Part shown: positions 29,615 through 61,530 of the stretch, in pieces
How positions within the stretch are numbered: position 1 is the stretch's first letter
Layout: the number at the start of each line of letters is the position of its first letter
Assembly: GCA_025603075.1 (NCBI GenBank)
Contig: MU626372.1
Location: 1-64,000 of the forward strand
DNA: 64,000 bases
Source of the DNA: Neoconidiobolus thromboides FSU 785
Lineage: Eukaryota > Fungi > Entomophthoromycota
Direction of reading: 5' to 3'
The notes under the pieces: generated by a model
The model's database searches: none
Told to the model about the DNA's origin: nothing
Seen by the model: only the letters and a program-made list of their open reading frames with translations
Made by a program: the position numbers and the translations under genes

Positions 29615-30133
29615 TTAAGCAACGATAAGGTTTTCGTTAACTGCATTAAAGTTATTATCAAATAAATTGAAGTCATTAATACTATCACAAAATACAGCTG
29701 CTTCAGTATTACGATTAAAATCATTAACACAGAAACTGTTATCGTTAACTGCATTAAAGTCCTGTACAATGAATGGGAAGAAACCACATCCACCAAAGCC
29801 TCCCCATCCACCAAAACCATCACAACGACGATGAATACCAGATTGAGCAGATTGAGGATAAGCTGGTACAGCTCTACGATGGATTCCGGACTGAGCCATT
29901 TGTGGATAAGCTGGTGAAACTGGTGAAGCTCTACGATGGATACCAGATTGAGCCATTTGTGGATAAGCTGGTACGGCTGGTGAAGCTCTACGATGGATAC
30001 CAGATTGAGCAAGTTGGGGATTGATGGGCATAGCTCTACGATGGATACCAGATTGAGGTTGAGAAGGAGGTTGAGGAGAAACAGCAAAAGCAGTAGCTAA
30101 AAGAGATAAGGAAACTAAGGTGTTGAAAATCAT
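29615..30133 (-). CDS. secreted tandem-repeat precursor (5 x ...QSGIHRR) plus Cys/Gly/Asn-rich tail; KEX2-processed repeat protein-like
   Basis: Signal peptide MIFNTLVSLSLLATAFA; repeats ending in RR; paralogs at 59012 and 60622. Confidence 0.9.
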   Translation of the reverse strand: MIFNTLVSLSLLATAFAVSPQPPSQPQSGIHRRAMPINPQLAQSGIHRRASPAVPAYPQMAQSGIHRRASPVSPAYPQMAQSGIHRRAVPAYPQSAQSGIHRRCDGFGGWGGFGGCGFFPFIVQDFNAVNDNSFCVNDFNRNTEAAVFCDSINDFNLFDNNFNAVNENLIVA

Positions 30134-30325
30134 TTTTATAGTTTAAAAGTATTGGATAAATGTTTAGTCAATAAACAGTCAAATATTTGATATTGTTTTT
30201 TGAATGAATCTGAATTGCTTTTATACTCCTTTATAAAAACAATTTATCTTTAGAATCAATAATTTATCATTTGAATTCCTTTTTAAATAAATCGATTATT
30301 AGAATTCCATTTAATTTATCTTCTG
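30134..30325 (-). promoter_or_regulatory. conserved promoter/5'UTR of the IHRR-repeat gene family (TATAAAA plus several GATAA)
   Basis: TATAAAA ~92 nt upstream of ATG; GATAA near 30244, 30264 and 30316; aligns with 60486-60621 and 58880-59011. Confidence 0.6.
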
Positions 30326-31437
30326 CATCACTTTTTTGATTAACATTAATGATTAATAAAAAAATATAATAATATTAGTTTAAAGTTTTATTTTTTATTA
30401 TTATTTATAAATAGATAAATCTACTTTAAAATTCATACAAGCTAATAAAGTATAACTAGATTTAAGTAACTTTAATGTCAGTGGTCAGAATAAAGGAGGG
30501 CTATCAAATCAAAACAATAATTCGATGTCTTTTTAGCTCTAATTTTTTGAATTCTGGTATACTTGACATATAATAGTCTTTTTAATTTATTAAGGGTTCT
30601 ATTAAATTATCTAAATCTTGACTTAAACCTTTTAAGCATTGAAAGTCTTAAAATATTCTTTTTGATTGGACTATAATTTTTAAGAGATTTTACTAGTTAA
30701 TTTGCTTCTTTTAAAATTCAATATTTAATAGTTAATCAAATTGAAACTGTGTAAATAATGTTCATTATGATTTGATTTTAATAAAAAGTTGACAAATATT
30801 GTTTGCCTACAATATTCAAGTAATTAAGAAATAAAGTCAGTTTGATGAGATAACTTGTTTTGAGTATTAGAAGAGTAAAAAATCTCAACTCAAATGAAGT
30901 TTGATTGGATTAATTCAACTTTTTAGTTGAGATTTGAAAAAGAGAATAGCTTGTGTGCTTTTATTTAAACTTAAGAATTTATTTTAATTAGTAATTAAAT
31001 TAATATAATTTGTAATTTCATTAATATATAAATTCAACAAACTATCAATTTCTAAATAAAAATAGAATATATATTTTTAAACTATAAAACTCTTAAGTTT
31101 TAATGAATTAAAAGTTGGAATTCAATTTTTATTAAAATGAACCAATCATTGTCAAACATTTAGTTTGCTTAGCTAACCACCAACAATTGAATTAAAAAAG
31201 GGTAACGTAATTGAATTTTAAATAAAGGAGAAATAAATTTTAGATTGATTACACTTTTTATTTATTTCATAAATAAATAAACTACATATAAAAAAGAACA
31301 AGATAATCTAAAGGTAATATGATAATTTAAATAACTATATATTTAATTAATTCATGTTTAAATTTATTTTATCTTAATTGTTTACTAATCCATTTTAAAG
31401 TTATTTTTGTATTTTTAAATTAGATTAAATTTCAAAA

Positions 31438-32322
31438 ATGTCTGATAATCGATATATAACACAAAATAAATTAGGAGAAGGTACTTATGCCTCTGTTTAT
31501 CGAGGAATTAATCGAGCCAGTGGAGATGTAGTAGCATTAAAAGAAATAACTTTAGATCCAGATGAGGGAGCACCAAGTACAGCTATTCGAGAAATTTCAT
31601 TAATGAAAGAGTTAAAACATCCCAATATAGTACGATTGTTAGATGTAGTTCATACTGAAAGTCGACTTACGTTAGTATTTGAATATATGGAACAAGATTT
31701 AAAAAGGTATCAAGATACTAAGGGAGTTAATGGAGTATTAGATCCAATAACCATTAAAAAATTTATGTATCAATTATTATCTGGATTAGCTTATTGTCAT
31801 GATTCAAGAGTATTACATCGGGATTTGAAACCACAAAATTTATTAATTGATGCTAGAAATAATTTAAAATTAGGGGATTTTGGACTAGCAAGGGCATTCG
31901 GTATACCAGTAGCTTCATTTTCTAATGAAGTTGTTACTCTATGGTATAGAGCTCCAGATGTTTTATTAGGTAGTCGAAATTATTCTACTGCTATTGATCT
32001 TTGGTCTGTTGGTTGTATTATGGCTGAATTATTTATTGGTAGACCCTTATTTCCAGGGGCCAATAATGACGATCAATTAATTAAGATATTTCGTATACTA
32101 GGTACACCAACAGACCAAACTTGGCCAACTATTAATCAATACCCCAATTGGAGACCTAATTCTCATCCTTATTACCCACCCACTAATTTAGCTAATCATA
32201 TTCCTACTAATGATCCTATTGCTTTAGACCTTATTGCTAGATTACTAATGTATCAACCACATCATCGTACCTCCGCTCAAGAAGCTCTTGATCATCCTTA
32301 TTTCCAAAATGTTATATTATAA
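31438..32322 (+). CDS. PHO85: Pho85/CDK5-type cyclin-dependent kinase (intronless)
   Basis: [33 protein letters not shown] and [10 protein letters not shown] motifs. Confidence 0.92.
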
Positions 32323-33161
32323 TAAGTAGTTTATTTTATATATTATAAATTATTTTATTTAATTTATTTAATTTTAATATTAATATTAGTTCTTTATTTA
32401 TTATAATAATTTTGTTATTAATTTTTTGATTTACTATTACTTTCAACTTAAAGTTTAGTATAATAATAAATATTATATTCATTACTCATTCAAGTTATTA
32501 TTACTTCTGTCTTTAAAAAAAGGATTTCATTTTGTAAAAGGTTTGTGTTTTTAATCAAAACAAAGTTAAGTAGATATGATTCTTTTATAGTTTATAAGGT
32601 ATATATATGTTAAATTATAGAACTAGTTATATTTTAATCTTTTGCTTTTTGAATTTATTAATCATTTCTTTTATATGAGTTTTTCAAACTTGCATAAATC
32701 ATTAGAGTACTTTTATTTATAAAAATGAAATTAGTATGTAATTTATTAAAATAATATAAATTTCAAATGTAATTAATACAATTTAATTTTAATTTTATTA
32801 GTCATTTTAATTAAAATTCTAAAATTCTAAATAACTTATTTTATATTATATTTTAAATAAAATATTTAAATTACACTATATTAATTATTAAGTAACTTTA
32901 ATTAGTTTAAAAACATATTATAAACCTTTATTAATTAGCCTAAAAGTTTAAAAAAGGACTAAATTCGAGTTAACCTCGAATACTTCTATTTATTAGAATA
33001 TTTTTTAAATCAAATTTTGTTATTATTAAGAAATAGATGACTTATAGCAATTAATTATGTTATAAAATTGAAAAATACTAGTTTTTTTTTGAACTTTATT
33101 TAAATAAAAATCTAAGCATTATTAAAAAACTGACTAGTTTATTGTAGGATAAAGATATTAA

Positions 33162-34436
33162 TTATTTAAATAAGTTAATCAATCTATTATGAAACTTTTT
33201 AGAATTATTTAATTTTAATTCAATATGTTGATAGTTAATTTCTTTTTCTTCTTTTATATTATTATTATTGAATGAGTTGAGCTTATTAAGGTTGATATTA
33301 TTATCTACAAAATAATAATATTTAGGTTGATTGAATATTTCACTTTTATAATATCTATTTAGTAATTCAATACTACTAATACGTAATTCTCCCTTCGGTA
33401 TAAAACATTGTTGCATTATTTGTTTATATTCTATTTTAATTAATATCATACATCTTACTGTATATTAAATTGTAACTTACCTATTTTGATTTTCTTTGAA
33501 TAATTCACTTGACCAGTAACAATAGCATAATAATTCTTTTCAACACTTGGATTTCCAAAGGGTAATGTACGTGTACACATAGCATATAATATAACCCCAA
33601 TAGACCAAATATCTACTTCTGGACCTTTACAGAAAATATTAATCATAATAGTAAATGAAACTCAATTGTAATTACCCACATAACAATTTGCTTTTACTAT
33701 TTCTGGGGAAATATAAGGAACAGTACCACAATAAGTAGTTAATTTTTGAGTTATGTTGAAATAATTAGACAATCCAAAATCTATTACTTTTAATTGTGAG
33801 GTATTAGTAATCATTATATTCTATAATTTATATTATTAATATCTATATATTATTTGATTAATAATTAATTAATGTTTACTTCAATTTTTAAATCTCTATG
33901 GACAATTGAATGGTAATGACAATAAGCTAAAACAAAATTTAAATTTAGTAAATAATAAAATAAATAATAAAACTTACTGATAGCATCTAATAATTGAAAT
34001 AAATATAAATTAATTTGTTTGGATTTTAATTTCTTTTTCTTTAATAAGGTAGCCAATGAGTTGCCTTCGATATATTCAAAGATTAAATAATAATACTCTT
34101 CGTCTTTAAAGTAAGTTTTTATATGTATAATATTGGGATGATTTAATAATAAGCAAATTTGAATTTCTCTTTCAACCCACTTATCTCTTTTTAAATCATA
34201 ACTACGTGCTATTTTTTTAAGAGCTAACTTTAGATAGGTTAATTATAGTTAATAATAATTAGTTAATTATAATACTTGAATAAGTGAAAACGAAATGTTA
34301 CCTTTTGGTTACTCATTATATCTTTAACTAAATACACTTGTCCATAGTTACCTTGTCCCAAGGTCCTTATAAGTTGATAACGATCATTTAATAATGTTTC
34401 ATCTTTTTTAGGCTCAATAGACAATTGAAATTTCAT
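33162..34436 (-). CDS. Ser/Thr protein kinase, KIN1/MARK/AMPK-related catalytic domain, 6 exons
   Basis: Five GT-AG introns join GQGNYGQV, LALK, HRDLKIEN, DFGLSN, YCGTVPYISPE and GPEVDIWSIGVILYAM; short Asn-rich tail. Confidence 0.85.
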
Positions 34437-34998
34437 TATTTAATAAAAGTCAATATAATATGCTTATTAAATAAATTTTAGTAATATAAAATAAATAAAT
34501 AAATAAATAAATAAGAAAAAGAAAAAGAAAAGGAAAAAGAAAAAGAAAAAAAGAAATAAGAAATAAGAAATAATAAATAATTTTATTACAAATAACAATC
34601 ATTCTTATTATTTCCTAAAAATTAAAATTAAATTTCCTATTTTTACTTTAATGAAATAAAGTTAACAACTCTAGATTGGAAATTAAAGAAGGTTGATTTT
34701 AAAATTTAAAACTTCCTTCTAGTTTGACACTAAAACATAGCCAAATAACTTAATATAAAACATAATAAACTTAAATATAAAATTAATTAAATTCAATTTA
34801 ACGACTCTTTTTTAAAATAATGATTAAAATCAAAATGAAATAATAAATATATTACAATAAGTTTTAAAATCTATTAATAATCTTTGTTTTTAAAAGTAAG
34901 CTTTTATTTGATCATTTGTATTAATGACTATCAACTAAATAATAAGTTGTATCTCTACATTCTAGTTTTATGCTTTATATATGTCTATATATGTATAT

Positions 34999-35099
34999 GG
35001 GGATATATATTTTTATTTAAAAATTTTACCGAATAGTCTTTCTACTCAAATAGTGCTTAAAAAATGGAAAAAGGTAATGAAACAAAAAAAAACATCCCC
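34999..35099 (+). mobile_element. MITE family copy
   Basis: GGGGATAT...ACATCCCC; ATAT/ATAT flanks. Confidence 0.85.
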
Positions 35100-35104
35100 A
35101 TATA

Positions 35105-36460
35105 ATACTAATCCAAATTCAAGACAATTCAATTATATTATACCACTTATTGACTATAATTTATCAAAGTTTTATTCAACTTTACTGAAACAGTTACTCC
35201 ACAAATTCAAAATCAACTATTATCAAGAAGTAAACTAACAATTTTAAAAATCAAAGCCAATAAATAAAATGGATGTTCTAAAAATTTACAAAATATGGGG
35301 TAAAAAATAAAAAGAGGGAATTAGTATATTAAGTAATCAATAATTTGACCAAATTTAGTACACTTGTTCCATCAAAGTCTAGATTATTTGTCTTTAGATA
35401 AGTTAATGAGTTTCTGATTTGTAACTATAAGTTATTATTATTAAAATACAATTTCTTCTAGAATTAACTTTCAAATTCATTATTTTTATTAAAGTTATTT
35501 TTGTTCTATTTTTACCAACTATTTCAAAACATTGAAACAATCTAGTCAAATTATTTTAATAAGTTATAGACTCAAACAATTAAGATTTAACTAGGAACTA
35601 TAACTTTATTCGAACTTCACCATTATTACTAATAAATGACAAAATCAATAATATCAAGAGTCAAGTAACAATTCTATAAAACTATTTGTCAATTTCAATT
35701 ATTTAATATGAGGGATGTTTTTTGGCCTCATCACTTTTTGCATTTTTCAAGCACTATTTGAGTGGAAAAATTGTTAGTAAAATACTTGAATACAAAAATA
35801 CATTCCCATATGTTATTATTTATTTTTCATTCTAAATTATTAAAAATCAAACAAAAGTAGAATATAAATTATATTAGGATTCTATTTCCATTTTTTATTT
35901 ATAGAATTCAGTCTCATATTAGACAATTTCGATATGTCATCTAACTATCTTAATTAGATCAAGAAGTTATTGACTTAATTTCATACCAAATACTATTCTA
36001 AATTTAAATAACTATTAATAAAAATAAAACAACAATTTTAAATAGATAAAGCCGATAAACAAATAATATATTGTATAAGAATATTTCAAAAGATGGGGTA
36101 AAAAAAGGAATCTGATTAAATTTAGTAACTATTTTCTACTCTAAGTTCAAATTACATGTGTTTAGATAAGTCAACAAGTCTCTGATTTCCAACTATAAAT
36201 TATTATTATTATTATTATTAAACTACAATTTCTTCTAGAATTGACTTTAAAATTCATTATTTTTGTTTTATTTACTTTTTAGTTTTATAGAGAAACATTG
36301 TTCTCATTTTTTATTAAAATTTTTAAAACATTCAAATAATCCGGTGTCAAATTAAATTGTTTAAAGAAATTATACAACATGTGGAAAATGAATTGTAGAG
36401 AGTTACAGATTCAAACAATTGAAATTTAATACAAAATTTAGTTTTATTTGACCATTATTA
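35105..36460. repeat. old tandem duplication of a ~550-bp non-coding unit (35105-35630 and 35880-36460), separated by a MITE
   Basis: Colinear shared blocks: atggggtaaaaaa, tttagataagt..a, ctgattt..aactataa, tacaatttcttctagaatt.acttt.aaattcattattttt, ga.tcaaacaatt. Confidence 0.7.
35710..35807 (-). mobile_element. MITE family copy
   Basis: GAGGGATG...CATTCCC; ATAT/ATAT flanks. Confidence 0.85.
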
Positions 36461-36925
36461 TTAACATGTTATGAAATAATCATAAGAAATTGGGAGATGA
36501 GCAACTGGTAATCCAAGGATTTCAAAAACAAAATGCCAAGTTAATATTTTAATAAAAAAGAAAACAACTATTTTTAGTTAATCAAAAGAGATCATCAAAC
36601 AGACCTCTAAAAGACACTAAAAATAGGCATTAAACTAAATAAATAAAAATAGTGATGTGATAAAAATGGACATTTAAATTAATCGTATGGCTAAAGTTCA
36701 TTACTTTATTTTCAGGGGTAAAAAGGTAACTTATAGTAATTTGATGTGGATAAAGAATTCCCAATTTAAGTTCAAGTTATTGGTTCAATGTCAAACCGTT
36801 AGTTAACTTTTTGAAGATGTTGATACTAGGTTTTAGAATAACATATATAAACAATTAAAAAAGTAATTTGAAAAAATATTCAAAAATAAATAATTTAATT
36901 CAATTTAGTTTAATTCAACTTTATA

Positions 36926-37477
36926 ATGACTATTACTTCTACTTCTAATTCTAATTCTAATTCTACTTCTACTTCCACTTCTACTTCTACTTCTACTTCT
37001 ACTTCTACAATTAATTTAATCAATCAAGATAATAATGATTTAAATTCCATCTATGAAAAATACCAACTTGATATTCATTCAGAAGAAGAAAGTGATAATG
37101 AAGATATAAGCTATGATACTAATTTGACTTTTTTTAAAAATTTAAAAAGACGAGTTTCTCATGGTACTATTAATTTCAAGCCCATTGCTTCAACTAATAA
37201 ATTAAACTTCAATTTATCTACTGCATTATTTAATAAAGGGCGTAGAAATTCATCTACTAGTATAACTACTGTATCTTCGAGCTCAACAACAAGTAAAATG
37301 GCCTCCCCTTCATTATTAAATAATGAGTTGAATCATCATAAACTAGGCTATTATCAAAGAAAAAATTCACATAATACTGATTTTGATCATATTTTATTAA
37401 ACGGTTTTTCAACGGAAGATAATCTTGGGAAAGATTATACATTGTCTTTGACATTGACACCGGATCTTATAAGATAA
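36926..37477 (+). CDS. 183-aa Ser/Thr-rich disordered protein with RRxS sites and C-terminal YTLSLTLTP motif
   Basis: ORF with (ST)n tract from a TCTACT microsatellite; KRRVS, RRNSS and RKNS motifs; terminal motif shared with three other ORFs. Confidence 0.75.
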   Translation: MTITSTSNSNSNSTSTSTSTSTSTSTSTINLINQDNNDLNSIYEKYQLDIHSEEESDNEDISYDTNLTFFKNLKRRVSHGTINFKPIASTNKLNFNLSTALFNKGRRNSSTSITTVSSSSTTSKMASPSLLNNELNHHKLGYYQRKNSHNTDFDHILLNGFSTEDNLGKDYTLSLTLTPDLIR

Positions 37478-38699
37478 CAATCATAAGCTGATTATTGATT
37501 TGTATATATTAATTTGATTCTCAAGGATATTTTCTATACTATCTAATGCTAATTTTTTTGTGCCATTTTATTTTTATTTTTTTCTATCTCCCCTTTTTTT
37601 ATCTAATTAAATATTTCTCTTTTGTTATATCTTTTGTTATTTTTACAATGTTTTAACTTTATTTTTTTAAATTATAAATTTAATTAATTATTGTTTAATA
37701 ATTTGATTTAACTTATTTTAATCTTTATTTAATAACAATTTATTATAAATTAATAATATCTTATACTAAAATAAAATGTCAGTATTAATAACTAATAAAA
37801 TAATGAATTTAATAAGATTACTTTGTATATTACTTTTTTTTTATATAAGATTAAAAGTAACAAGACATCAAAGTATTTATGTTAATGTAAAAAAAGATAA
37901 AATGAAACTAAGAGAAAGAATTAGAAAGACAGTATAGTAAAATTATATATTTTTTAATTTTATATATTTTTCATAAATTACTAGAATCCCTAATTAGTAG
38001 AAACAAATTATTATTCTTAATTAACAAAGTTAAATAATAATTTATTTTTTGATGCGCACTTATATTAAATAATGATCGAAATGTAATTAACATCCAATTT
38101 CATATACCATAGATTAGGTATGCATTTTGTATACAAATATATAAAAAATCACATATTATAGAAAATAATTTTACTTTTTTGTATAAGAAATTTTAAGATA
38201 TAGAATATTTATAACTTATGTGCTTTTGTTTCATTTTATTATAATCTTTGAATCATTTTTGAACTTGCTTTAGAATTTTAATAAAATTTAATATTTTTAC
38301 AATATTTTTTATTTTTATTTTAATAAAATAATTTGAGAAAGATTATTGGATATTAAAATGAAAAGCTATTCTTATAGGTTCCTTCAAAATTCCTAATTAG
38401 AAATTCGCTATCGAATTTTCAACTTTAAAAAATTAGCTCATTTTTAAAATTTACTAAATTGATTGAGAACTTTATTAACAATTCAACTCACATGGTGTTT
38501 TATTATTAAATAAATTAAATAATACTGCACCCAAATAATAGATGATTCAATTATTAGCCTACTTTTAATACCTTAAAAATATGAGCTCACTATTATAATA
38601 TTATTAAAATTATTAGAAAAAGATATATAAACCAAAGAATTTGAATATTTAAATATTATAATACAATTTAATTCGATAAATATAAATATTCAATCAACA

Positions 38700-39116
38700 A
38701 TGCAATTCTTCCAAACTATCTTAGCTTTATCTGCTGCTTCATTAGTAGTTTCCCAAGATGCTCAATCCAGCAATCCAACTCCATCCTCTTCTGCTACTGG
38801 AGTTCCAGATAAAGCTTCCTCTGTTTTATCCAAAGCTAGTGAAAGTGCTTCTTCTATTAAAGATGCAGAATCTAGTTCTCTTTCTTCTGTTAGATCCGAA
38901 GCTACTTCTGCTTCCGACTCTCTTAATTCAAAAATTTCTAGTCTTACTGAGTCAGTAAGCTCTCAAATCTCTAGTATGCAATCCAGTGTCTCTAGTCAAA
39001 TTCAATCTAAGAGTTCTGAAGTTAAAGGTAGTGGTACCTCAGATGCTTCAATTTCTAGCTTTAAATTTGTTGCTTACTCAGTTCCTGTATTGGCTGTCGC
39101 TTACGCTAATCTTTAA
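38700..39116 (+). CDS. small Ser-rich secreted, probably GPI-anchored cell-wall protein
   Basis: Signal peptide, Ser-rich body, hydrophobic C-terminus. Confidence 0.8.
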   Translation: MQFFQTILALSAASLVVSQDAQSSNPTPSSSATGVPDKASSVLSKASESASSIKDAESSSLSSVRSEATSASDSLNSKISSLTESVSSQISSMQSSVSSQIQSKSSEVKGSGTSDASISSFKFVAYSVPVLAVAYANL

Positions 39117-40945: not shown

Positions 40946-42439
40946 ATGTTAAAGGGATTTATTTTATCTTTATTAGTGGCTTCATCACTTGCTTTGGACC
41001 CTATCATTGCCAAAGGAAATAAATTCTTCAATAAAAAAACTGGTGAAATATTCCATGTGAAAGGTATAGCTTATCAACCCCGTGGAACTACAGACGAATC
41101 CAAAAAAGATCCATTGGCCTTCCCAGAAAATTGTAAAAGAGATGTTGAATATTTCAAAGACTTAGGTCTTAATGTTGTTCGAGTATACGAAGTCGATCCC
41201 GCCAAAGATCATAAAGAATGTATGAAGATTTTTGCTGATGCTGGTATTTATTTAGCATTAGATGTACCTATACCAAAATATTCTATTAATCGGGATGAAC
41301 CTACTTATACTATTGATATGTTAGAGCACTTCAAACAAAATATTGATGCATTTGATCAATTCGATAACGTTGCTTTCTACTTTGCAGGAAATGAAATTAA
41401 CAATGATAAAACAAATACTGATGCTAATCCATTTGTTAAGGCTTCTTTAAGAGATATGAAAGCTTACATCAAAACTAAGAAGCATCAAGTATTAGTTGGA
41501 TATGCTAACAACGATGATACTGATACTCGTAAAAACATTGAAGCTTATTTTAACTGTGGTAAAGATGAAGAAAGAGCTGATTTTTATTCTGTTAATGTCT
41601 ATTCTTGGTGCCGCTCTGAATCATTTGAAGCTTCTGGTTATCCTGCCCTTACCAAAGAGTTTAAAGATTATAGCATCCCAATTTTCTTTAGTGAATATGG
41701 TTGTAATACCGCACGTCCTCGTGAATTCGTTAATGAATTAAAATCTATGTACGGACCTGATATGGAGGAAGTAGTTGCTGGTGGTATCCTTTATGAATAT
41801 ACTCAAGAAGATAACAAGTATGGTATTGTTAAAATCAACGGTGGCAAAGTAGAAAAGATTAAAGATGAGTATGATAACTTTAAGAAAGCTCTTGCTGGCA
41901 TCAAACCTAAGAAGTATACTATTGATAGTTATAACCCTAAAAATACCGAAGCTTCTACTTGTCCTAAAATTGGAAAGGATTGGGAAGCTAGTGAAAAATT
42001 ACCACCAACACCTTCAAATAAAAAATGTAAATGTATCGTAGATTCATTAAGCTGTAAGGTCAAAAAAACCGACTTAAGTGGTGATGAAATTGGAAAAACA
42101 TTTAAATACCTTTGTGAAAAGGCCGATTGTAAAAAAGGACTTGGTTCTGATCCTTCTAAAGGTGAATATGGTAACCTTTCTGGATGTTCAGCTATTGATC
42201 AACTTAGCTGGGCACTCAATGAAGTCTACATGAAAGAGAACAAGAATAGCGATGCTTGTGTTGGTGAAAGTGGATTAGGTGAAGTTCAAACTCCTAGTGG
42301 AGATCTTAAATCTTGTGATGGCGTAAAGGAAGATATCAGTGCTCCAGGTTCTGGAAGCAATGGTAGTAGTGGAGCTTCATTTACAAAATACTCTTCTTCT
42401 TTGTTAGCAGTTGCAGTTGTTGGTAATTACCTTCTTTAA
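40946..42439 (+). CDS. GH72 beta-1,3-glucanosyltransferase (paralog of 26789-28288)
   Basis: Same GH72 motifs, X8 Cys box and GPI-like tail. Confidence 0.95.
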   Translation: MLKGFILSLLVASSLALDPIIAKGNKFFNKKTGEIFHVKGIAYQPRGTTDESKKDPLAFPENCKRDVEYFKDLGLNVVRVYEVDPAKDHKECMKIFADAGIYLALDVPIPKYSINRDEPTYTIDMLEHFKQNIDAFDQFDNVAFYFAGNEINNDKTNTDANPFVKASLRDMKAYIKTKKHQVLVGYANNDDTDTRKNIEAYFNCGKDEERADFYSVNVYSWCRSESFEASGYPALTKEFKDYSIPIFFSEYGCNTARPREFVNELKSMYGPDMEEVVAGGILYEYTQEDNKYGIVKINGGKVEKIKDEYDNFKKALAGIKPKKYTIDSYNPKNTEASTCPKIGKDWEASEKLPPTPSNKKCKCIVDSLSCKVKKTDLSGDEIGKTFKYLCEKADCKKGLGSDPSKGEYGNLSGCSAIDQLSWALNEVYMKENKNSDACVGESGLGEVQTPSGDLKSCDGVKEDISAPGSGSNGSSGASFTKYSSSLLAVAVVGNYLL

Positions 42440-45563: not shown

Positions 45564-46520
45564 TCAAGCAGTTTGTGGTTTAGCAAGTTCAATACTGTTA
45601 GTGGCACCGAGAATACGTTTAATATCGCCGTAAATAGCGAACTGGCCTGATGTAAGGGCACCAACCATGATAATACGAGCGCCAAGGCCAAGAAAGAGCC
45701 CACGTGGACCAAGTTCTTTAGCCGCGATGATTAAGCGAGGTACAATAGACCCTTCAGCACCCTTTTGTTTATTGATTTTAGAGAGAAGGGTATCAGCTGG
45801 TTGGGATATAATAGCAGCAGCAAAACCAGCAATCAAACCAGCACCAAGGTTGATATAAGTATTAGTGACTGGAGAAAGTTGTTCCTTTGATTTGCCAATG
45901 GAAGCGTAGATGGCTTCAGTGGCACGTTCGTAGGCAACAAATTTAGTCATGTTGTATGGAACTTGTTTGAAAAGAATCGGGATGAAACCGGAGTAGAAAC
46001 CACGGGCTACACCTTCTTCTTTAAAGATACGACTGAAACCCGATATAAGGCCAGTAGCGAATCCAGGTTGAGAAACAAGACGAATACGAGTGGCTTCAAG
46101 TGGGCAAAGAGCGATATCAGCAAAGAATTCAGCAATAGCTGAAGAAGCAAGGTATACGGCAGTACGATTATTAGTGGCAGTTTCAACACCAACTGTTTCA
46201 ATAATGGTCTTTTTGAAGAATTCATATCCCCCAAATTTAAAGGCACCTTGAATAAAATAACCAGTAACAGTTGGTCCAAGACCAGTAAGAAGGATACCAG
46301 CACCTTCATTCTTAACTACTTGGCGGAAAGAACCAAGCATTCCATTTTTGTACACAGTTGGTTCAAGCTGCATACGAGTTTTAACAACATCAATTGGGGT
46401 TAAAGTACCATGGGTAACAGCGCAGGAAATGGCACCTGCAAAGGCAGAGCGGGCAAAAAAGTCTATTCCAGTTGGTGGAGCAGATTCTTTAGGCTTACGA
46501 GCAATAATATTTGAGTGCAT
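45564..46520 (-). CDS. MIR1: mitochondrial phosphate carrier
   Basis: Three PxDxxKxR-type carrier repeats; [17 protein letters not shown] and [21 protein letters not shown] are typical of Mir1/PiC. Confidence 0.92.
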
Positions 46521-50001: not shown

Positions 50002-50092
50002 GGGGATGTTTTGTTTAAGAATTTCATTAATGATCTTTTCACTCAAACAATGCTTAAAAAATGGAAAAAGTGATGAAATCAAAAACATCCTC
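50002..50092 (+). mobile_element. MITE family copy
   Basis: ATAT/ATAT flanks. Confidence 0.85.
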
Positions 50093-53202: not shown

Positions 53203-53471
53203 ATATATAAATAAATTTCTGTGCACTTAATATATCATTACTTCAATTATTAATTTACTATAGATTACACAAAATAAATATAGTTTATAATAGGCTATTT
53301 TTCAATCCAAGTCGGGTATAATGAAAAAACGACTATATGTATTATGTTTAATAATCCTGCTTATTTTAATCAAAAAGTACAAAATAAAATTAAAAATAAA
53401 GTTAAAACAGAATAAATTAAATTTTTTGTAAACATTTAACAATTTTTATATAAATGATAAAGTAGGAAGAG

Positions 53472-53549
53472 TTGAGAAATTTGCCCAATTACCAAGAAAT
53501 TCCGTAAGCTTGTGAGCTATTTTGCTGAGAGATTGGGCAAATTTCACAA
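53472..53549. repeat. 19-bp inverted repeat (one mismatch) with 42-nt spacer
   Basis: ttgagaaatttgcccaat ... attgggcaaatttcacaa. Confidence 0.7.
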
Positions 53550-54301
53550 TTACCCGCTTAAAGATATATTTTCGTTATTCCATGTTTTAAAATCCAGTTT
53601 GTAATTTTTAGTTAATTTTAAAAAACCAATGTTCTACTTTAATTCATTTGTAAAATTTAAAAATTCACTAAGACTTAACGTTTCGTTACTATTGAATTAG
53701 TATTAACTCAATTTACCAGTGCCAGGTAGTCATAAATAGTAATTGAGCTGTAGATACACCTTATTCTGAAAGCTCTATTTTTACAATCTAATTAAATTAA
53801 ATATGATTTTTAAAAAAGCATCATCTCACTTAAAATACGAAATGGCATAAATGGGCATTTTATGATGCAATATTAAAGTGAAGTGTCCAACTTTGATTAG
53901 TTTAAATAATTGAAAAGAATTAATGATAAGAAATCCAAACATGACAAAAATCGCTAATAATTCTATCATTTATTCTAGGTAAATAAATCGAACTCTTAAC
54001 CATTACAGTGTCATTTTATTAATAAAAAGTGTAATGACCCCTTCTTACAAGAAAAAAAGCTGAACCTCATAGCTATTATTTTATCGGAATAAAACCTGAT
54101 TGGATTGTTCTAAAAATAACTTTGGTCCATAATTGGCTCTAAACTTCACTGGGGTAGAATAGTGTGGAGTTAAGTCCGCGATAGCCAAATGAAACATTTC
54201 CAACCAATAAGCTTTCAATCAAAAAAAGTTGTAAAATAATATAAAAAGTATGGACTAGCTATAAGAATATCTTTTTTTTTAAAAAAATATAAGATAGAAA
54301 C

Positions 54302-55325
54302 ATGTCGCAAACCTATAACTTACGCCAGATCGGTGCTGCTAATACCGCCGAATACCGTCTCTATTATGGTAAGTAGTATTATTGATTTGTTTCTTAATTA
54401 TTCATTTTCAATTAATAGAGGAAAATGGTACTATAATTTCACCATTCCATGACATTCCGCTTTATGCTGATGAAGCTAAAGGTATCTTCAACATGGTCGT
54501 TGAGATCCCTCGTTGGACCAATGCCAAGCAAGAAGTAAGTTTAATGATTTATTAGTAAGAATTAGGTTAATATTTTTAGATTGCTACTGGGGAACCTTTC
54601 AACCCAATTAAACAGGATATTAAAAAAGGTAAACCACGTTTTGTAAGAAACTGCTTCCCACACCATGGTTATATCTGGAACTATGGCTGTATCCCACAAG
54701 TAAATTTAAATCTCTTCTAATTGGCTATAATTTATTTATATTCTAGACTTGGGAAGACCCTAACTTTAGTCACCCAGATACCAAAGCACGTGGTGACAAT
54801 GATCCAATTGATGTGTGTGAAATTGGAGAACAAGTCGCATACCCAGGTCAAATCAAACAAGTTAAAATTTTAGGTACACTTGCTTTGTTAGATGAAGGAG
54901 AAACAGATTGGAAAGTTATTGTAATTGATATCAATGATCCTTTGGCTTCAAGGCTTAATGACATTGAAGATGTTGAACGTCACCTTCCAGGTCTTTTAAG
55001 AGCCACTGTTGAATGGTTCCGTATTTACAAAATCCCAGATGGTAAACCAGAAAATCAGTTTGCTTTCTCAGGAGAAGCCAAGAATAAGAAATACGCTACT
55101 GAAATCGTACTTGAAACCCATCATCACTGGAAGAATTTAGTTAATGGTACTACACCTGCTAAATCAGCCTCTTATGACCTGTCAATTGTTAATTCAACTT
55201 TGGAGAATAAAGTCAGTAAAGACGATGCTGTTTATCAAAGCGTACCACAAGAAAATGTTAAACCTGCTGCGTCTATTGATCCTTCCGTTGATAAATGGTT
55301 CTTTATCTCCGGCTCTTCAGTCTAA
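54302..55325 (+). CDS. IPP1: inorganic pyrophosphatase (family I), 4 exons
   Basis: [34 protein letters not shown] and DEGETDWK motifs across three GT-AG introns. Confidence 0.93.
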
Positions 55326-55443
55326 TCGAATTTAAAATATAATTATAAAGAAATATAAAAAATTTAAAAATGACTTACTAAGTTTAATATGCGAAAGTTT
55401 TATTATAATAAAGTTGATTTGAATTCAAACTGTCAATAATAGT

Positions 55444-55542
55444 GAGGATGTATTTTTGTGTTTAACAATTTTACTAACAATTCTTCCGCTCAAATAGCGC
55501 TTAAAAAATGGAAAAAATAATGAAACCGAAAAAAACATCTCC
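55444..55542 (+). mobile_element. MITE family copy
   Basis: Consensus match; lies between the two pyrophosphatase genes. Confidence 0.85.
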
Positions 55543-55987
55543 AGTATAGTAATATAGTATATAGTAATATAGTAAGATTGGTTAATAAATTGTTTAAACT
55601 TAGAATGACTATTAATTATAAAGCTAATTAACAAAATTATTTATTATGCTAGAATTTAATGCCTCTGATCAAAAAAATATTCTATCTCTTGGGATATATA
55701 TAAAGAGCAATCTTATTATCAAAATAAACATTGATTAAACATTTGAATTGACTTTATTAAATATTCTTACACTCTCAAGCTAAATTAATCGTCCCATTAT
55801 TGACTATAATATTTAACAATTAGTAGTGTCTTTGAATTTATCCATCATCACCCAATCATAGTTGACTATAAAAAGTATTTAAGCATTTGAAAATAAAACC
55901 AAAGCTTAAATTCCAAAGTAAGAAAAACATAACAAAGAGTTCTATTTATTAATTAATTTTGAAGTGTTTAAACAAACAATAAGAAAG

Positions 55988-57017
55988 ATGAGCAGTTATC
56001 AACTTCGTCAGGTAGGCTCAAAATACTCTAAGGATTTCAAGTTATATTTAGGTAACAAAAATTTATTGATTTCAATAATATGAATAAGTACAATTCAATA
56101 TTTGAATAATAGAAAAAGATAGCAAACCCATTTCTTTTTTCCATGATGTACCAATGAGACCAAATAAAGGTGATGATTATGTATTCAATATGGTTGTAGA
56201 AATCCCTAGATTTTCAAATGCAAAAGCAGAGGTAATTATAAGTTACAGCTTCAAGTAGATTTTTTATCAATAAGGTTAATAGATTGCTACTAAGAGTGAG
56301 TTGAACCCAATAAAATACGATGTAAAAAAAGACAAAGTACGCTTTGTAAAAAATCAATTCCCTTATAAAGGATACCTTTGGAACTACGGTGCTATTCCTC
56401 AAGTAAGCTTAATATAACAATATATAAAATAATATCTTTAATTTTAATAGACTTGGGAAGACCCAGAATATATTAACCCAGATACTAAATGTAAAGGAGA
56501 TAATGACCCAGTAGATGTATGTGAAATAGGAACTCGAGTAGCTAGTATAGGTGAAATTAAACAAGTAAAGTTGATCGGTACTCTAGCCATGTTAGACGAA
56601 GGAGAAACAGACTGGAAGATGTTATGTATTGATATTAACGATCCAAAAGCCAATTTAATTAACGATATTGAAGATGTTGAAACCCAATTTCCAGGCTTAT
56701 TAAATGCTACTTTAGATTGGTTTAAATATTACAAAGTACCAGATGGTAAACCTAAGAATAAGTTTGCTTTTAATGAAAAGTTTTTAAATAAAAAGTACGC
56801 CTTAAGTGTTATCAATGAAACTCATCATCATTGGTCAAACTTAATCAAAAGTAAAGCCCCATATGACCACCTTCATACTAGAAACTCTACCTTACATGGT
56901 ACACCTCATTATAAAAAAGATATTTCTGATATACCAAATCAAGATGTAAAACCCGATCATCCTATTTCAAAAGACGTTGATGACTGGTACTTTATTAACA
57001 AGAATTCGAAATTATAA
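55988..57017 (+). CDS. second inorganic pyrophosphatase (tandem paralog), 4 exons
   Basis: [38 protein letters not shown] and DEGETDWK; introns at the same positions as the upstream copy. Confidence 0.9.
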
Positions 57018-57081
57018 ATAAAAATTCAAAAGGCTTTTAATGAAATTAGATTTAACATGCACTTTATTTCAATGAAAATGT

Positions 57082-57337
57082 TTATTTAGCTGATGGAGTA
57101 TGCTTTGAGTGTGAGTCATCCATTCTGCCTTTGTAAAAAGAATACTAGTAAAAATTAATAACTAATAACATTGTTAAAATAAATCATTACCAAAAGCATC
57201 ATACCAACAGTAAGTCCCGAGCCCATGGCCATGGACTTCATGTCGTATTTTCCAAAATTATCGGTAGTAGAAGTGTAGCCCCTTTTAAATAATTTTAAAT
57301 TAAACGGTTTAAAGCCATTAGTCGATAGCAAACTCAT
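57082..57337 (-). CDS. putative ~69-aa single-TM microprotein with mitochondrial presequence-like N-terminus, 2 exons
   Basis: MSLLSTNGFKPFNLKLFKRGYTS...; a 46-nt GTAATG...TACTAG intron gives the tail YSFYKGRMDDSHSKHTPSAK*. Confidence 0.45.
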
Positions 57338-57760
57338 TTTTTGAAATATCTCTTCTTTAAGTCACCCTTTTTATTTTTATAGTTTTTGGAGCTGCTCAGG
57401 ATGATATCAACTTGAGTTCAATTTTAAGTCATGCAAAGCTCATAGTTAAATGCTGATTTTTATTTCATCGAGATCATTATTTATATTAATCATTAGCTTA
57501 TGAATATACTGGACTTTAATAATAAAATAAAACTCCAACTTATAAATATTTATTATATTTTTGAATAATTTTAATATTCCAACCTAAAAACCCACAGCAT
57601 TTAGTTAAACGAATAAAAACGCTTAAAATCCAAAAATCATACCTATTAATAGGCTATTTTCTAAAGCACCAAAGTATCAACGTCATCTAAATACTGCTTA
57701 CAAACTATAACTAAGTAATTTGCTCAAATTTGGTTTTTATCTTATACTTATCAAATCAAC

Positions 57761-58733
57761 ATGTATGCCTCACGTTCCGAATATGATCGAGGAGTGAACA
57801 CCTTCTCCCCAGAAGGACGTTTATTTCAAGTTGAATATGCCTTAGAAGCCATTAAAGTAAGTTACTTATTTATTAGAGAAATACTTGTTAAACAATTGTA
57901 ATTTTTTACTAGCTTGGTTCTACGGCCGTCGGCCTTGAAACTTCTGAAGGCGTAGTTTTAGTAGTTGAGAAAAGAATTACTTCAAAACTGTTAGAACCTA
58001 GTTCAGTAGAAAAGATTTTAGAGATTGATGAGCACATTGCTACCACTTTCTCAGGATTAACTGCAGATTCTAGAACCATTATCAATCATGCTAGAGTTGA
58101 AGCCCAAGTAAATAATTCTATACTTTTATTAAGTTGATATTAATTACAGACTTAGAATCACACTTTTACTTATAACGAAAAGATTAAAGTTGAATCAGTG
58201 ACTCAGGCAATTTCAGATTTAGCGTTGAGGTTTGGAGAAATTGAAGATTCTGCGGCCATTATGGTAAGATGATTTTAGAAATATCATATTATATTTTAAT
58301 ATTCATCAGTCACGTCCCTTTGGTGTTGCTACTTTAATAGCTGGTGTAGATGAAGTTGGACCTCAATTGTAAGAAAATCTAATCTTTTCAAAGAAACATG
58401 ACTAATCATTTAGATATTATTGTGATCCTTCTGGTACATTTTCAAGATATTCAGCCAAAGCAATTGGGTCCGGATCTGAAGGTGCACAAAGTGAATTGAA
58501 GGAATTATATAATAGTGTAAGCTAATTCAAATAATATAATTAAATATGGATGATAATGATCAAACTAGAATTTAACCTTAGAAGAAGCAGGTATTATGGC
58601 TCTCAAAGTAGTTAAGCAAGTGATGGAAGAAACACTTACAATTAAAAATGTACAAGCAGCTATTGTTACTAAGGAAAAGGGATTCCATATCCTTGATACT
58701 CAAGAGTTGCAAAACTGGCTCGCTCATTTATAA
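57761..58733 (+). CDS. PUP2: 20S proteasome subunit alpha-5, 6 exons
   Basis: [34 protein letters not shown] and [12 protein letters not shown] motifs joined by five GT-AG introns. Confidence 0.95.
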
Positions 58734-59011
58734 ATAATGGATTAAAGTACCATTTTTTTGTTCTTTTAAGGTATTTTTTGTTTTTTTCTTAATATTTTCT
58801 ACCATTGTTTTATAAAATTGTTAATTTAATTTTAATTTTAATTTAAATTAGCATGATTCAAATGATTTATCAAGTAATTAAATTGATAGATAAATGATTT
58901 TAAAGATAAATATCTACAAAAGAGTATAAAAGTAATCAAAATCCTTTGAAAAGCTTTATCAAGCATTTAACTGTTTATTGACTAAACAATTATTCAATTT
59001 TTAATTACAAA

Positions 59012-59482
59012 ATGATTTTCAATACCTTAGTTTCCTTATCCCTTTTAGCTTCTGTTTTTGCTGTTTCTCCTCAGCTCCCTTCCCAAGCCCAATCTGGTAT
59101 TCACCGTAGAGCTATGCCCATTAATCCTCAACTTGCTCAATCTGGTATTCACCGTAGAGCTATGCCCATTAATCCTCAACTTGCCCAATCTGGTATTCAC
59201 CGTAGAGCTATGCCCATTAATCCTCAACTTGCTCAATCCGGTATTCATCGTCGTTGCGACGGTTTTGGTGGATGGGGAGGTTTTGGCGGATGGGGAGGTT
59301 GTGGTGGATGTGGCTTTTTCCCATTTGTCGTACAAGATTTCAATGCAGTCAACGACAATAACTTCTGTGTCAATGATTTTTGCCAAAATACTGAAGCAGC
59401 TGTATTTTGCGATAGTGTTAATTGCTTCGATCAAAATTGTTGCAACTTTAATGCAGTCAATGAAAACCTCATTATTGCTTAA
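59012..59482 (+). CDS. secreted tandem-repeat precursor (4 x ...QSGIHRR, three identical AMPINPQLAQSGIHRR) plus Cys/Gly/Asn-rich tail
   Basis: Signal peptide; 48-bp coding repeats; paralog of 29615 and 60622. Confidence 0.9.
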   Translation: MIFNTLVSLSLLASVFAVSPQLPSQAQSGIHRRAMPINPQLAQSGIHRRAMPINPQLAQSGIHRRAMPINPQLAQSGIHRRCDGFGGWGGFGGWGGCGGCGFFPFVVQDFNAVNDNNFCVNDFCQNTEAAVFCDSVNCFDQNCCNFNAVNENLIIA

Positions 59483-59903
59483 AGTAGTCAATATTTAATT
59501 GTTTTTGATGTAGCTTAATTGATTTAAGTTTCATTTTTATTCAATAAAATAGGTTTGATAGTATTTTAGATTTTAAAAACCTTTATTTTTTTATTTATAA
59601 TATCCTTAAATCAAAATGAAATTAGGACTATCTATAGGGGTGAATTTATTACAAAAATCAAGTCAGTGTAAGCATAAAAACCAGAGCTTTCTACTATCAT
59701 ATGATATTTACTTACAACACTTTTCATCTAGATCTATGAATTATCACCGTATAATGATGTAGGGAATTCTATAAAACTAGCTATTTTTCAAAGGTTTATT
59801 AATGTCTTTAGACTATTTTATTTAATAGCTTTTATTGTTATGTTGTATTATTTTTTACATAAAAATAATAGAGAATACCATCATATAAATATCATTTAAT
59901 ATA

Positions 59904-60002
59904 AGAGGTTATTTTTTTGGTTTCATCACTTTTTCCATTTTTTAAGCGCTATTTGAGTGAAAAAATTGTTAGTAAAATTCTTAAACAAAAAAATATGTCT
60001 CT
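59904..60002 (-). mobile_element. MITE family copy
   Basis: Reverse-orientation consensus match; termini worn. Confidence 0.8.
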
Positions 60003-60485
60003 ATTTTTATTGAATTGTAAATAATTTTATAAACAATTTTAAAATATTTGCTTAATTCCAAACTTAAGATAGTAAACATTATATGAAAAATTTTGTAAGG
60101 ATTGTCTCTTGTGTGGTAATACCCTATCTATTAAAACTTTGAATAATTCTATGTAAAGTTTAATAATTCTTAAAAGGCATTATGATATATTAAAATATAT
60201 CGTCTCAAGAAATTATATCTAAAAAGGGACTTAATAATCGTTTTAATTTAGTGGCCCTCCTTTATCCTGATCTCCAACATCAAATTTACCTAGGTTTAGA
60301 TGTGCTTAAACAATTTACATGGGCTTTAAAGTTGATATCTATCTATAAATAATAGAAAAAAATAAGACTCTTTGAACTAATATTATTACGATTCTTTATT
60401 GATCACCAAGATTAATCAAAACAGTGATACTGAAGATAAATTAAATAGAATCTTAGTGATTGATCTATGCAAAAAGCAATTAAAC

Positions 60486-60621
60486 TGATAACTATTGATT
60501 CTAGTGATAAATTAAAATTTTGAGTAAATATAAAAAGCAATTCAGATTCATTCAAAAAACAATATCAAATATTTGACTGTTTATTGACTAAACATTTATC
60601 CAACACTTTCAAACTATAAAA
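60486..60621 (+). promoter_or_regulatory. conserved promoter/5'UTR of IHRR-repeat gene
   Basis: GATAA at 60487 and 60506, TATAAAA at 60529; nearly identical 5'UTR to the 30134-30225 copy. Confidence 0.6.
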
Positions 60622-61062
60622 ATGATTTTCAACACCTTAGTTTCCTTATCTCTTTTAGCTACTGCTTTTGCTGCTCCACCTCAACGTCCTTCTCAAGCTC
60701 AATCTGGTATCCATCGTAGAGCTTCACCAGCTTCACCAGCTTACCCACAAATGGCTCAATCCGGAATCCATCGTAGAGCTGTACCATCTTATCCACAATC
60801 TGCTCAATCTGGTATCCATCGTCGTTGTGATGGCTTTGGTGGATGGGGAGGATGTGGTGGATGGGGAGGATGGGGAGGATGTGGTGGATGTGGTTTTTTC
60901 CCATTCATTGTACAAGACTTTAATGCAGTCAACGATAATAACTTCTGTGTTAGTGATTTCAACCGTAACACCGAAGCAGCTGTATTCTGTGATAATATCA
61001 ATGACTTTAATGCAGCATCTAATTGCTTTAATGCAGTTAACGAAAATCTTATCATTGCTTAA
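60622..61062 (+). CDS. secreted tandem-repeat precursor (3 x ...QSGIHRR) plus Cys/Gly/Asn-rich tail
   Basis: Signal peptide, RR-terminated repeats, GGWGGCGG tract, FNAVND...FNAVNENLIIA. Confidence 0.9.
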   Translation: MIFNTLVSLSLLATAFAAPPQRPSQAQSGIHRRASPASPAYPQMAQSGIHRRAVPSYPQSAQSGIHRRCDGFGGWGGCGGWGGWGGCGGCGFFPFIVQDFNAVNDNNFCVSDFNRNTEAAVFCDNINDFNAASNCFNAVNENLIIA

Positions 61063-61395
61063 GGGATATAGTTGTTTGAGTTATTTTTAGTATAGCTTAA
61101 TTGACTTAGGTTATATTTCATTCAATAAAATGAGTTTGACAGTAGTTTTTTTAAGATATATTTGACATGTTTCTATAATATTTACAACTATTTTTAAAAG
61201 GCTTTGATACAAAATATAAATGACTATAACTTATTAGTATTTTATCTAATGTGTAACAAATGATAACTATTGGTCCTAATGATGAATTAAAATTTTGAGT
61301 GAGTGCAAAAAAGCAACTCAGATTCATTCAAAAAATAGTATCAAATATTTGACTGTTTATTAACTAAACAAATTTCAATACTTTTAAGCTATAAA

Positions 61396-61530
61396 ATTAA
61401 TTTCAAATACTTTAGTTTCCCAACTTCTTTTAACAGCTACTTTTATTGCCTCTCCTTAGCCTCTCTCAAGCTCAATCTGGTATCCACCATAGAGAGCTAC
61501 TCTAACTGCCTCAGCCTATCTACAGAAAGC
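61396..61530 (+). pseudogene. truncated relic of the IHRR-repeat gene family
   Basis: Upstream region homologous to 60486-60621; ATG changed to ATT; residual gctcaatctggtatccaccatag repeat; premature TAG; tail lost. Confidence 0.8.

Follow-up and report, generated by a model that had tools for sequence, protein, structure and literature searches.

QSGIHRR repeat proteins of Neoconidiobolus thromboides: predicted kexin substrates in which a propeptide appears to have been tandemly amplified

The yeast alpha-factor precursor (MF-alpha) is a secreted polyprotein from which short peptides are freed by Kex2 and Kex1. Fungal Kex2-processed repeat proteins (KEPs) are defined by a signal peptide and at least three tandem repeats of 8-100 aa separated by KR, RR, KK or RK (PMC6339444, PMC7329392). 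Two surveys (Le Marquer et al. 2019, PMC6339444; Umemura 2020, PMC7329392) found KEPs to be mostly lineage-specific; the set includes 2560 stand-alone KEPs, and Zoopagomycota is the KEP-richest phylum, with 11.6 per strain (PMC6339444, PMC7329392). Almost no KEP products have so far been observed in early-diverging fungi. N. thromboides was not among the species of either survey, and QSGIH, the motif described below, was not found in the accessible portion of the survey supplements. In Ustilago, Kex2 release of surface-active peptides has been proven for Rep1, which together with Hum3 and Rsp1 formed our Ustilago comparison set (PMC4617103). [quoted passage not shown]

The window analysed here is a 64,000-nt stretch of contig MU626372.1 of N. 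thromboides FSU 785. A sequence-only reading had reported in it three intact genes, each encoding a signal peptide and three to five QSGIHRR units of 16-19 aa, and open reading frames were found at exactly those positions. Gene 1 (29615-30133, minus strand, 172 aa) consists of a signal peptide (30083-30133), five units (29825-30082), a tail (29618-29824) and the stop codon (29615-29617). Gene 2 (59012-59482, plus strand, 156 aa) has a signal peptide (59012-59062), four units (59063-59254), three of which are the same peptide, AMPINPQLAQSGIHRR, and a tail (59255-59479). Gene 3 (60622-61062, plus strand, 146 aa) has a signal peptide (60622-60672), three units (60673-60825) and a tail (60826-61059). 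All three are intron-less. Genes 1 and 2 are missing from the public protein set, and gene 3 is identical to its model P0001. All copies keep the 17-aa signal peptide, called by eye, whose hydrophobic core spans 12 uncharged residues and which has A-F-A at -3 to -1.

The copies also share flanking DNA. A conserved 26-nt leader box holding the dyad TGTTTA-N5-TAAACA lies upstream of gene 1 (30161-30186, minus strand), gene 2 (58963-58988, plus strand, 3 mismatches) and gene 3 (60569-60594, plus strand). Since RNA contigs begin at ~60555, the gene 3 box lies within the transcribed leader. This subfamily box was not found at the P0004/P0011 locus. The ~85 nt directly 3' of the stop codon are conserved across genes 1-4; in gene 3, the 3' UTR (61063-61144, plus strand) has an AATAAA signal, and a poly(A) run follows position 61144 in an RNA contig. 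The relic that had been noticed at ~61396-61530 is real and begins further upstream (61345-61530, plus strand): its leader box (61345-61370) has 1 mismatch, and behind it lie the decayed remains of a signal peptide and a first unit. The relic has lost its ATG and its tail, contains an in-frame TAG and a 2-nt deletion, and reads QSGIHH where intact copies read QSGIHRR (Arg-to-His). A neighbouring contig carries a second relic, a fifth gene (L001) and gene 4, which runs off the end of the contig. This gene 5 is unannotated, and has the same leader, only two units and a Gly/Cys/His tail.

RNA-library contigs span genes 2 and 3, and one of them carries the poly(A) end. Word depth for gene 3 reached ~45,000 in one RNA run (X1). 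For gene 1, 0.5-0.6 of the sampled words were present in RNA runs, and many runs held such words. The relic was almost silent, with an RNA depth of ~3. Intergenic DNA was mostly without RNA coverage, except for an 84-nt high-depth element (59912-59996). This element is a dispersed repeat, and matched neither a tRNA nor an Rfam family.

Every unit in genes 1, 2 and 3 ends in QSGIHRR, and the number of units differs between the paralogs (five, four and three), as had been noted from the sequence. A degenerate DNA pattern for QSGIHR gave 12 exact matches and one match with a single mismatch, the latter in the relic, against a chance expectation of 0.03. Across the subfamily the units take the form [AV]xPxxP[QS]x[AP]QSGIH-RR, in two to five copies. 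The core variants listed earlier are all present, and further variants were found: ASPASPAYPQMAQSGIH, and first units that begin VSPQ.. and APPQR... The 15 motif copies differ at seven nucleotide sites, and the four copies of AMPINPQLAQSGIHRR at eight; all of these differences (7/7 and 8/8) are synonymous. No K/R interchange or loss of the dibasic site occurred in the 15 motif copies, while the motif has decayed in both relics. Judged by this substitution pattern, purifying selection acts on the amino-acid sequence of the units, and concerted evolution among them could inflate the apparent conservation. A scan of metagenomes with the motif DNA returned 29 loci, none of which is a real family member: each is a single match in DNA of 42-70% GC with surrounding stops, as expected by chance.

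The tails had been described as Cys-rich, a description that has to be revised. Those of genes 1-3 (69-78 aa) contain 4, 9 and 7 Cys, whose positions are not conserved; Gly, Asn and Phe outweigh Cys, and Phe/Cys swaps occur. Tail pN/pS was ~0.1-0.35, with pS of 0.2-0.8. Pfam returned nothing above noise for the three window proteins, gene 5 and 10 family members, and a PDB profile search returned only noise. Neighbours in the ESM Atlas language-model space scored at most 0.72 and serve as leads only. AlphaFold2 gave no fold, with a pLDDT of 35 for the whole protein (4 sequences) and 42 for the tail (18 sequences). A hydrophobin domain with the conserved 8-Cys pattern is absent from the tail, as judged by the absence of a Pfam match and by its 4-9 Cys at non-conserved positions.

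Homologs of the tail were sought by profile search over 1.84 billion representative proteins. The first search returned P0004 of N. thromboides, P0005 from a metagenome and P0007 of Coemansia, all aligned to the tail and not to the repeats; the second added P0017 and P0018 of N. thromboides and P0019-P0025 of Coemansia. Five other matches were rejected. P0003, which has no signal peptide and whose repeats read VSGPHRR, and P0006 matched the repeat part of the profile and are unrelated repetitive ORFs; P0009 and P0010, likewise matched through the repeat part, resemble them; P0008 matched the Gly-rich start of the tail and is an unrelated repetitive ORF with no signal peptide. On sequence grounds, the tail is the conserved core shared by an unnamed family of small secreted proteins in Zoopagomycota, a family that comprises N. 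thromboides paralogs and many proteins of Coemansia (Kickxellales). The family plan starts with a signal peptide and a single short propeptide that ends aliphatic-x-(K/R)-R; then come a (Gly-Gly-aromatic/Cys)n stretch and an Asn- and Phe-rich C-terminal part of ~55 aa with the terminus N-x-N-(V/L)-I-(A/G). Among the homologs found, the tail occurs in N. thromboides, Coemansia and the metagenome protein, and the QSGIH units in N. thromboides only.

Loss of the RR sites in homologs had been named beforehand as evidence that would speak against processing. The dibasic site was instead kept in distant homologs: RR (or KR) directly before the Gly-rich part is invariant in the alignment (A3). Exactly one [KR]R per whole protein, at the propeptide junction, is present in 15 of 17 relatives, and their mature parts avoid additional [KR]R pairs. 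P4 in the relatives is L, I, V or M, with one exception, and Kex2 prefers an aliphatic P4 (10.1101/2020.05.27.120113). Aliphatic P4, basic P2 and Arg at P1 of the junction are thus shared across two subphyla. One relative, P0025, has no propeptide, which suggests that the propeptide is non-essential for the tail. In the tree, Coemansia split from N. thromboides with support of 98/95, and the QSGIH clade has the P0004 clade, whose members carry a single propeptide, as its sister, which makes amplification the derived state. Because the relatives carry a single propeptide that ends at the same junction, the QSGIHRR units appear to be this propeptide, amplified together with its cleavage site. 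Small ORFs are often unannotated (here 3/5), so both the restriction to two genera and the single-propeptide state of the relatives may be artefacts.

We propose, with a probability of about 0.6, that the genes are a young N. thromboides-specific subfamily with a tandemly amplified propeptide, within an older pre-pro-protein family, and that their products are released by kexin. The precursor would enter the ER, where the signal peptide would be cut off after ..AFA. A kexin of the late secretory pathway would then cleave after each I-H-R-R, and a Kex1-type carboxypeptidase would remove both Arg residues. The tail-derived secreted product would be one acidic Gly/aromatic/Asn-rich polypeptide of 69-90 aa or, for gene 5, a 43-aa Gly/Cys/His peptide. 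It would be co-secreted with two to five uncharged Pro-containing 14-17-mers ending QSGIH. The tail would represent the ancestral product. Since the units are constrained at the amino-acid level, their role probably depends on their sequence, whether they act as released peptides or assist the secretion and cleavage of an aggregation-prone tail. Kexin domains are reported for Entomophthorales generally; counting against the model, the 18 subtilases listed for C. thromboides FSU 785 include no S8B kexin (PMC6169396). The original reading of the locus as a peptide precursor stands in part: the KEP architecture and the aliphatic P4 favour it, and the tail, as the probable ancestral and conserved product, would not be the accessory it was taken for.

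In line with the original reading, the QSGIH-terminated 14-17-mers might themselves be the main bioactive products, for instance extracellular signals, quorum- or pheromone-like factors, or effectors against insects or microbes; the tail would then only be co-released. Whole units kept despite synonymous divergence are consistent with this, as are the retention of units next to a different tail in gene 5, the very high transcript depth, a peptide size within the 9-24 aa class typical of pheromone-like KEP peptides (PMC6339444), and a unit number and type that differ among paralogs and among isolates, as in other KEPs. However, conservation across subphyla lies in the tail, which is under purifying selection, and not in the units, and the propeptide of the relatives is single and dissimilar. 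The predicted peptides have no net charge (pI ~6.8, two at 9.8), and the tails have a pI of ~4, which led us to reject a cationic antimicrobial role. A Ste13 signature (X-Ala or X-Pro) does not follow the Kex2 site, as the units start A-[MSVI]-P. Because the peptides are uncharged and without this signature, neither a cationic antimicrobial nor an alpha-factor-like role is indicated by their predicted sequences. We consider it possible, if somewhat unlikely, that the peptides are the main products.

The proteins might also remain uncleaved, as Pro-rich/Gly-rich structural components of the wall or conidial surface in which RR serves for charge or wall binding. Their composition resembles that of low-complexity secreted structural proteins, their variable Cys positions would suit intermolecular cross-linking, gene 1 adjoins a gene for a GH72 wall glucanosyltransferase, and the language-model neighbours include cuticle, chorion and spidroin-like clusters (<=0.72, leads only). 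This is nevertheless very unlikely, given an invariant aliphatic-x-basic-Arg, present once per relative at the propeptide junction, which is the signature of a processing site; the stability of the dibasic site over the 15 motif copies and the avoidance of extra [KR]R pairs in the mature parts argue the same way. A RiPP origin, dikaritin-like or other, with the units as core peptides, is extremely improbable, even though a signal peptide, repeats and Kex2 sites make up the layout of ustiloxin-type precursors (PMC7329392), and a P450 fragment is present at 15491-16447. Gene 1 is 14 kb away from this P450 and genes 2 and 3 are 43 kb away, the known dikaritin clusters come from Dikarya, and the units would derive from a propeptide. 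In agreement with the earlier statement that no tailoring gene is nearby, Pfam scans of the 13 large window ORFs found no DUF3328/UstYa domain, the only HxxHC matches in a six-frame scan of the window lay in two open stretches (14 and 30 aa), and neither a tyrosinase nor a methyltransferase turned up in the window.

Returning to the amplified-propeptide explanation, a tentative and rather doubtful extension is that the tail is a Zoopagomycota-specific self-assembling surface or matrix protein, a hydrophobin stand-in. The propeptide would keep it soluble until the kexin cut, and the amplified propeptide would have been recruited as a second peptide product. To our knowledge, hydrophobins are known only from Dikarya. 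If this extension were true, a KEP would have been caught arising from a propeptide. More generally, the locus adds to the KEPs a highly transcribed family, mostly unannotated, from an insect-associated fungus that has been little studied. It also defines an unnamed small secreted family with a conserved dibasic site, common to Entomophthoromycotina and Kickxellomycotina. Amplification of a propeptide and its Kex2 site in tandem would be an evolutionary route to repeat-peptide precursors, and the exactly predictable peptide masses make the family a simple system in which to study kexin processing in early-diverging fungi.

Among described systems, the family is, by sequence criteria, a fairly ordinary new example of fungal Kex2-processed repeat proteins. 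Tandem amplification of the propeptide and its site to two to five units would bring the proteins under the formal KEP definition; genes 1-3 have the sequence features of KEPs (five, four and three units), while gene 5, with two, falls outside. The likeness to KEPs lies in the signal peptide, three or more RR-separated tandem units of 8 aa or longer, and the lineage-specific occurrence; the differences are that the units can be traced to the amplified propeptide of an older single-propeptide family, and that a conserved non-repeat domain follows them. Ustilago maydis Hum3 likewise has Kex2-separated tandem repeats followed by a conserved C-terminal domain (PMC4617103), but that domain is a hydrophobin with a fixed 8-Cys pattern, whereas in the tail described here the Cys positions vary and Pfam gave no match. 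The repeats of Hum3 and Rep1 are 31-55 aa long and amphipathic, in contrast to Pro-containing, uncharged units of 14-17 aa. The alpha-factor precursor yields peptides of similar size (Atlas neighbour score 0.65, a lead only), but X-Ala/X-Pro Ste13 spacers and a glycosylated pro-region are absent here, a conserved C-terminal domain is present, and there is no sequence similarity. K2PP proteins such as SnTox3 share the order of signal peptide, short disordered pro-region ending aliphatic-x-K/R-R, and mature protein. P0004 and the Coemansia proteins, the relatives with a single propeptide, fit this order exactly; all of them, together with gene 2 (tail 75/139) and gene 3 (78/129), have the K2PP features, and gene 1 is borderline (69/155). 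The subfamily differs from K2PP proteins in that the mature part is of low complexity rather than a folded Cys-stabilised effector, and in that the pro-region is multiplied two to five times, each copy with its own site.

The three genes proposed by the sequence-only reading were found by an ORF check: gene 1 at 29615-30133 on the minus strand (172 aa, five units), gene 2 at 59012-59482 on the plus strand (156 aa, four units) and gene 3 at 60622-61062 on the plus strand (146 aa, three units). All three have the same secretory-type, hydrophobic N-terminus of 17 residues with A-F-A at its end, followed by units of 16-19 aa, each closed by QSGIHRR, and a non-repeat tail of 69-78 aa. The unit consensus was [AV]xPxxP[QS]x[AP]QSGIH-RR, with I-H-R-R invariant; the residue after RR was Ala in 10 cases and the first Cys of the tail in five. 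A degenerate DNA pattern for the motif (QSGIHR) had 12 exact matches and one match with a single mismatch in the window, where 0.03 were expected. The public model of gene 3 is P0001, and genes 1 and 2 are missing from the public protein set, since the first protein matches comprised only P0001 and a partial protein, P0002. The predicted peptide AMPINPQLAQSGIH has a computed monoisotopic mass of 1475.755, and those of the other predicted linear peptides include 1424.705, 1440.700, 1723.835, 1739.830, 1711.799, 1457.726, 1447.742 and 1472.748.

Gene 1 adjoins the first of two inverted GH72 (Gas-type glucanosyltransferase) + X8 paralogs, located at 26789-28363(-) and 40946-42439(+). The window also contains a P450 fragment (15491-16447), a protein kinase (31438-32322), a mitochondrial carrier (45564-46520) and a pyrophosphatase fragment (54813-55325). 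At ~63400 a stretch of N marks an assembly gap; beyond it, close to the end of the contig, lies a (AATAAAAT)n microsatellite. The window reaches the end of its contig (66,981 nt).

The relic that had been claimed is real: it lies at ~61396-61530 on the plus strand and is the one-mismatch match of the motif pattern. It retains the conserved 5' leader, but its ATG is gone, and it carries an in-frame TAG, a 2-nt deletion and QSGIHH, with no tail. Further copies were located in the same assembly (GCA_025603075.1) on contig MU626339.1 (locus L001). P0002, from N. thromboides FSU 785, lies at the very start of this contig and is cut by its edge. A second relic at L001:1438-~1720(+) has lost 1 nt and shares its in-frame TAG with the window relic, which suggests duplication of a gene and a relic together as one block. 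Gene 5, at L001:3149-3436(+), encodes 95 aa with the family signal peptide, two QSGIHRR units and a 43-aa tail made of a Gly/Cys/His repeat, (CGGHGG)n, with 23 Gly, 9 Cys and 6 His. This gene is unannotated; in the public annotation, the other strand carries a gene of 76 aa instead. Its first 169 nt, including the leader, are 98% identical to gene 3, and its 3' UTR is unrelated.

The seven copies whose 5' end is preserved all have a leader of ~110 nt in common. Within it is a 26-nt box with a TGTTTA-N5-TAAACA dyad, found in the window at 30161-30186(-), 58963-58988(+), 60569-60594(+) and 61345-61370(+). The box lies ~35-50 nt upstream of each ATG, and in gene 3 it is within the transcribed leader. 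The dyad may represent forkhead-like half sites, or it may form a 6-bp hairpin in RNA.

Both the units and the tail showed purifying selection. Among the 15 complete copies of the motif in five genes, all 7 of 7 variable nucleotide sites were synonymous (naive probability ~4e-5). The unit AMPINPQLAQSGIHRR occurs in four copies, one in gene 1 and three in gene 2, and its 8 variable sites were likewise all synonymous (~1e-5); thus the whole unit is constrained, and not RR alone. In the Asn/Phe-rich part of the tail, pN/pS was 0.11-0.35 at pS 0.2-0.8. In both relics, the motif decays once the frame is lost.

RNA-library contigs cover genes 2 and 3, with a word depth of up to ~45,000 for gene 3 and only ~3 for the window relic, contig-derived depth being a poor measure of expression. 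Intergenic DNA was mostly without such coverage. Position 61144 is followed by a poly(A) run in one RNA contig, and there is good support for both transcription and polyadenylation of gene 3. For gene 1, a fraction of 0.5-0.6 of the sampled words was present in several RNA runs. In one library, a variant of gene 2 lacked two units and one Gly-rich segment, and hence the repeat number is polymorphic. Near-identical transcripts of the QSGIHRR genes appeared in RNA runs X1-X27, which carry the labels of about a dozen organisms. These may be labels of related isolates, or else this fungus or strains close to it often accompany or contaminate other samples. A dispersed repeat of ~84 nt at 59912-59996 had very high RNA-contig depth and many different flanks. 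Its copies number 22 in the 64-kb window (e.g. 62492-62574, 55451-55534 and 11130-11212), three in L001 and seven in L031 (contig MU626265.1), and it matched neither a tRNA nor an Rfam family.

A search with a profile of four QSGIHRR proteins covered 1.84 billion representative proteins. It brought up no relatives of the repeats, but the tail matched P0004 (from another N. thromboides contig), the metagenome protein P0005 and P0007 of Coemansia sp. With a second profile, P0017 and P0018 from N. thromboides and P0019-P0025 from Coemansia joined the list. All of these relatives are annotated as hypothetical proteins. Small ORFs are under-annotated, which limits any conclusion on taxonomic distribution. 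No relative of the proteins was found in Pfam or the PDB, and AlphaFold yielded no fold. The relatives share a common plan, in which a signal peptide is followed by one short propeptide, often with His, ending in KR or RR. The mature part then runs through (GG-aromatic/Cys)n, GFFPF and an Asn/Phe-rich stretch of ~50 aa to N-x-N-(V/L)-I-(A/G). Cys positions are not conserved across the family, and Phe/Cys swaps are common; in several Coemansia proteins, as in the QSGIHRR proteins, a Cys directly after KR starts the mature part.

Lack of conservation of the RR sites in homologs was one of the results that would have refuted the sequence-only reading; the dibasic pair proved invariant in the family alignment, distant relatives included. 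In 15 of 17 relatives, the propeptide junction holds the only [KR]R in the whole protein; the exceptions are P0011, with two, and P0025, which has no propeptide. With one exception, the relatives have L, I, V or M at P4 of the junction, matching the reported preference of Kex2 for aliphatic P4, basic P2 and Arg at P1 (10.1101/2020.05.27.120113). P0004 and P0011 are tandem paralogs of the wider family (L031:6001-6339 and 7293-7850), and the 26-nt leader box was not found at their locus. Between its two dibasic sites P0011 has an extra Asn/Phe-rich segment, a further modular variation of the pro-region.

In a maximum-likelihood tree built on the mature parts, Coemansia was separated from N. thromboides and the metagenome protein with support of 98/95, and the sister group of the QSGIH clade was the single-propeptide P0004 clade. 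Parsimony makes one propeptide the ancestral state and the 2-5 units a derived state, reached by tandem amplification of the propeptide together with its site. Units 2 and 3 of gene 2 are neighbours with 98% identity; near-identical adjacent units and a polymorphic unit number show that the amplification is recent and still ongoing.

We propose that a kexin cuts after each RR and that a carboxypeptidase then trims the basic residues. One acidic tail polypeptide (pI ~4) would be secreted, accompanied by two to five peptides of 14-17 aa that carry no net charge (pI ~6.8). Kexin domains have been reported in Entomophthorales generally. For C. thromboides FSU 785, no S8B kexin is listed in PMC6169396. 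Other roles for such a precursor were considered. The composition argues against cationic antimicrobial peptides, and the lack of X-Ala or X-Pro spacers speaks against a precursor of the alpha-factor type. A RiPP is disfavored by the absence of a DUF3328/HxxHC ORF and of other tailoring genes near the genes; a Pfam scan of 13 large ORFs found no such domain, as had been stated from the sequence.

Kex2-processed repeat proteins (KEPs) are abundant in Zoopagomycota, and most are lineage-specific. N. thromboides is absent from both KEP surveys (PMC6339444; PMC7329392), and the QSGIH motif did not occur in the survey supplements examined. Genes 1-3 fall under both published KEP definitions (PMC6339444; PMC7329392). 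A precedent for the two-part layout is Hum3 of Ustilago maydis, in which repeats separated by Kex2 motifs precede a conserved C-terminal domain (PMC4617103), and the single-propeptide relatives fit the pattern of Kex2-processed pro-domains (K2PPs; 10.1101/2020.05.27.120113). Given the definitions, the Hum3 precedent and the K2PP fit of the relatives, we would place the QSGIHRR genes in the known KEP type, to which they would add a clear origin story.
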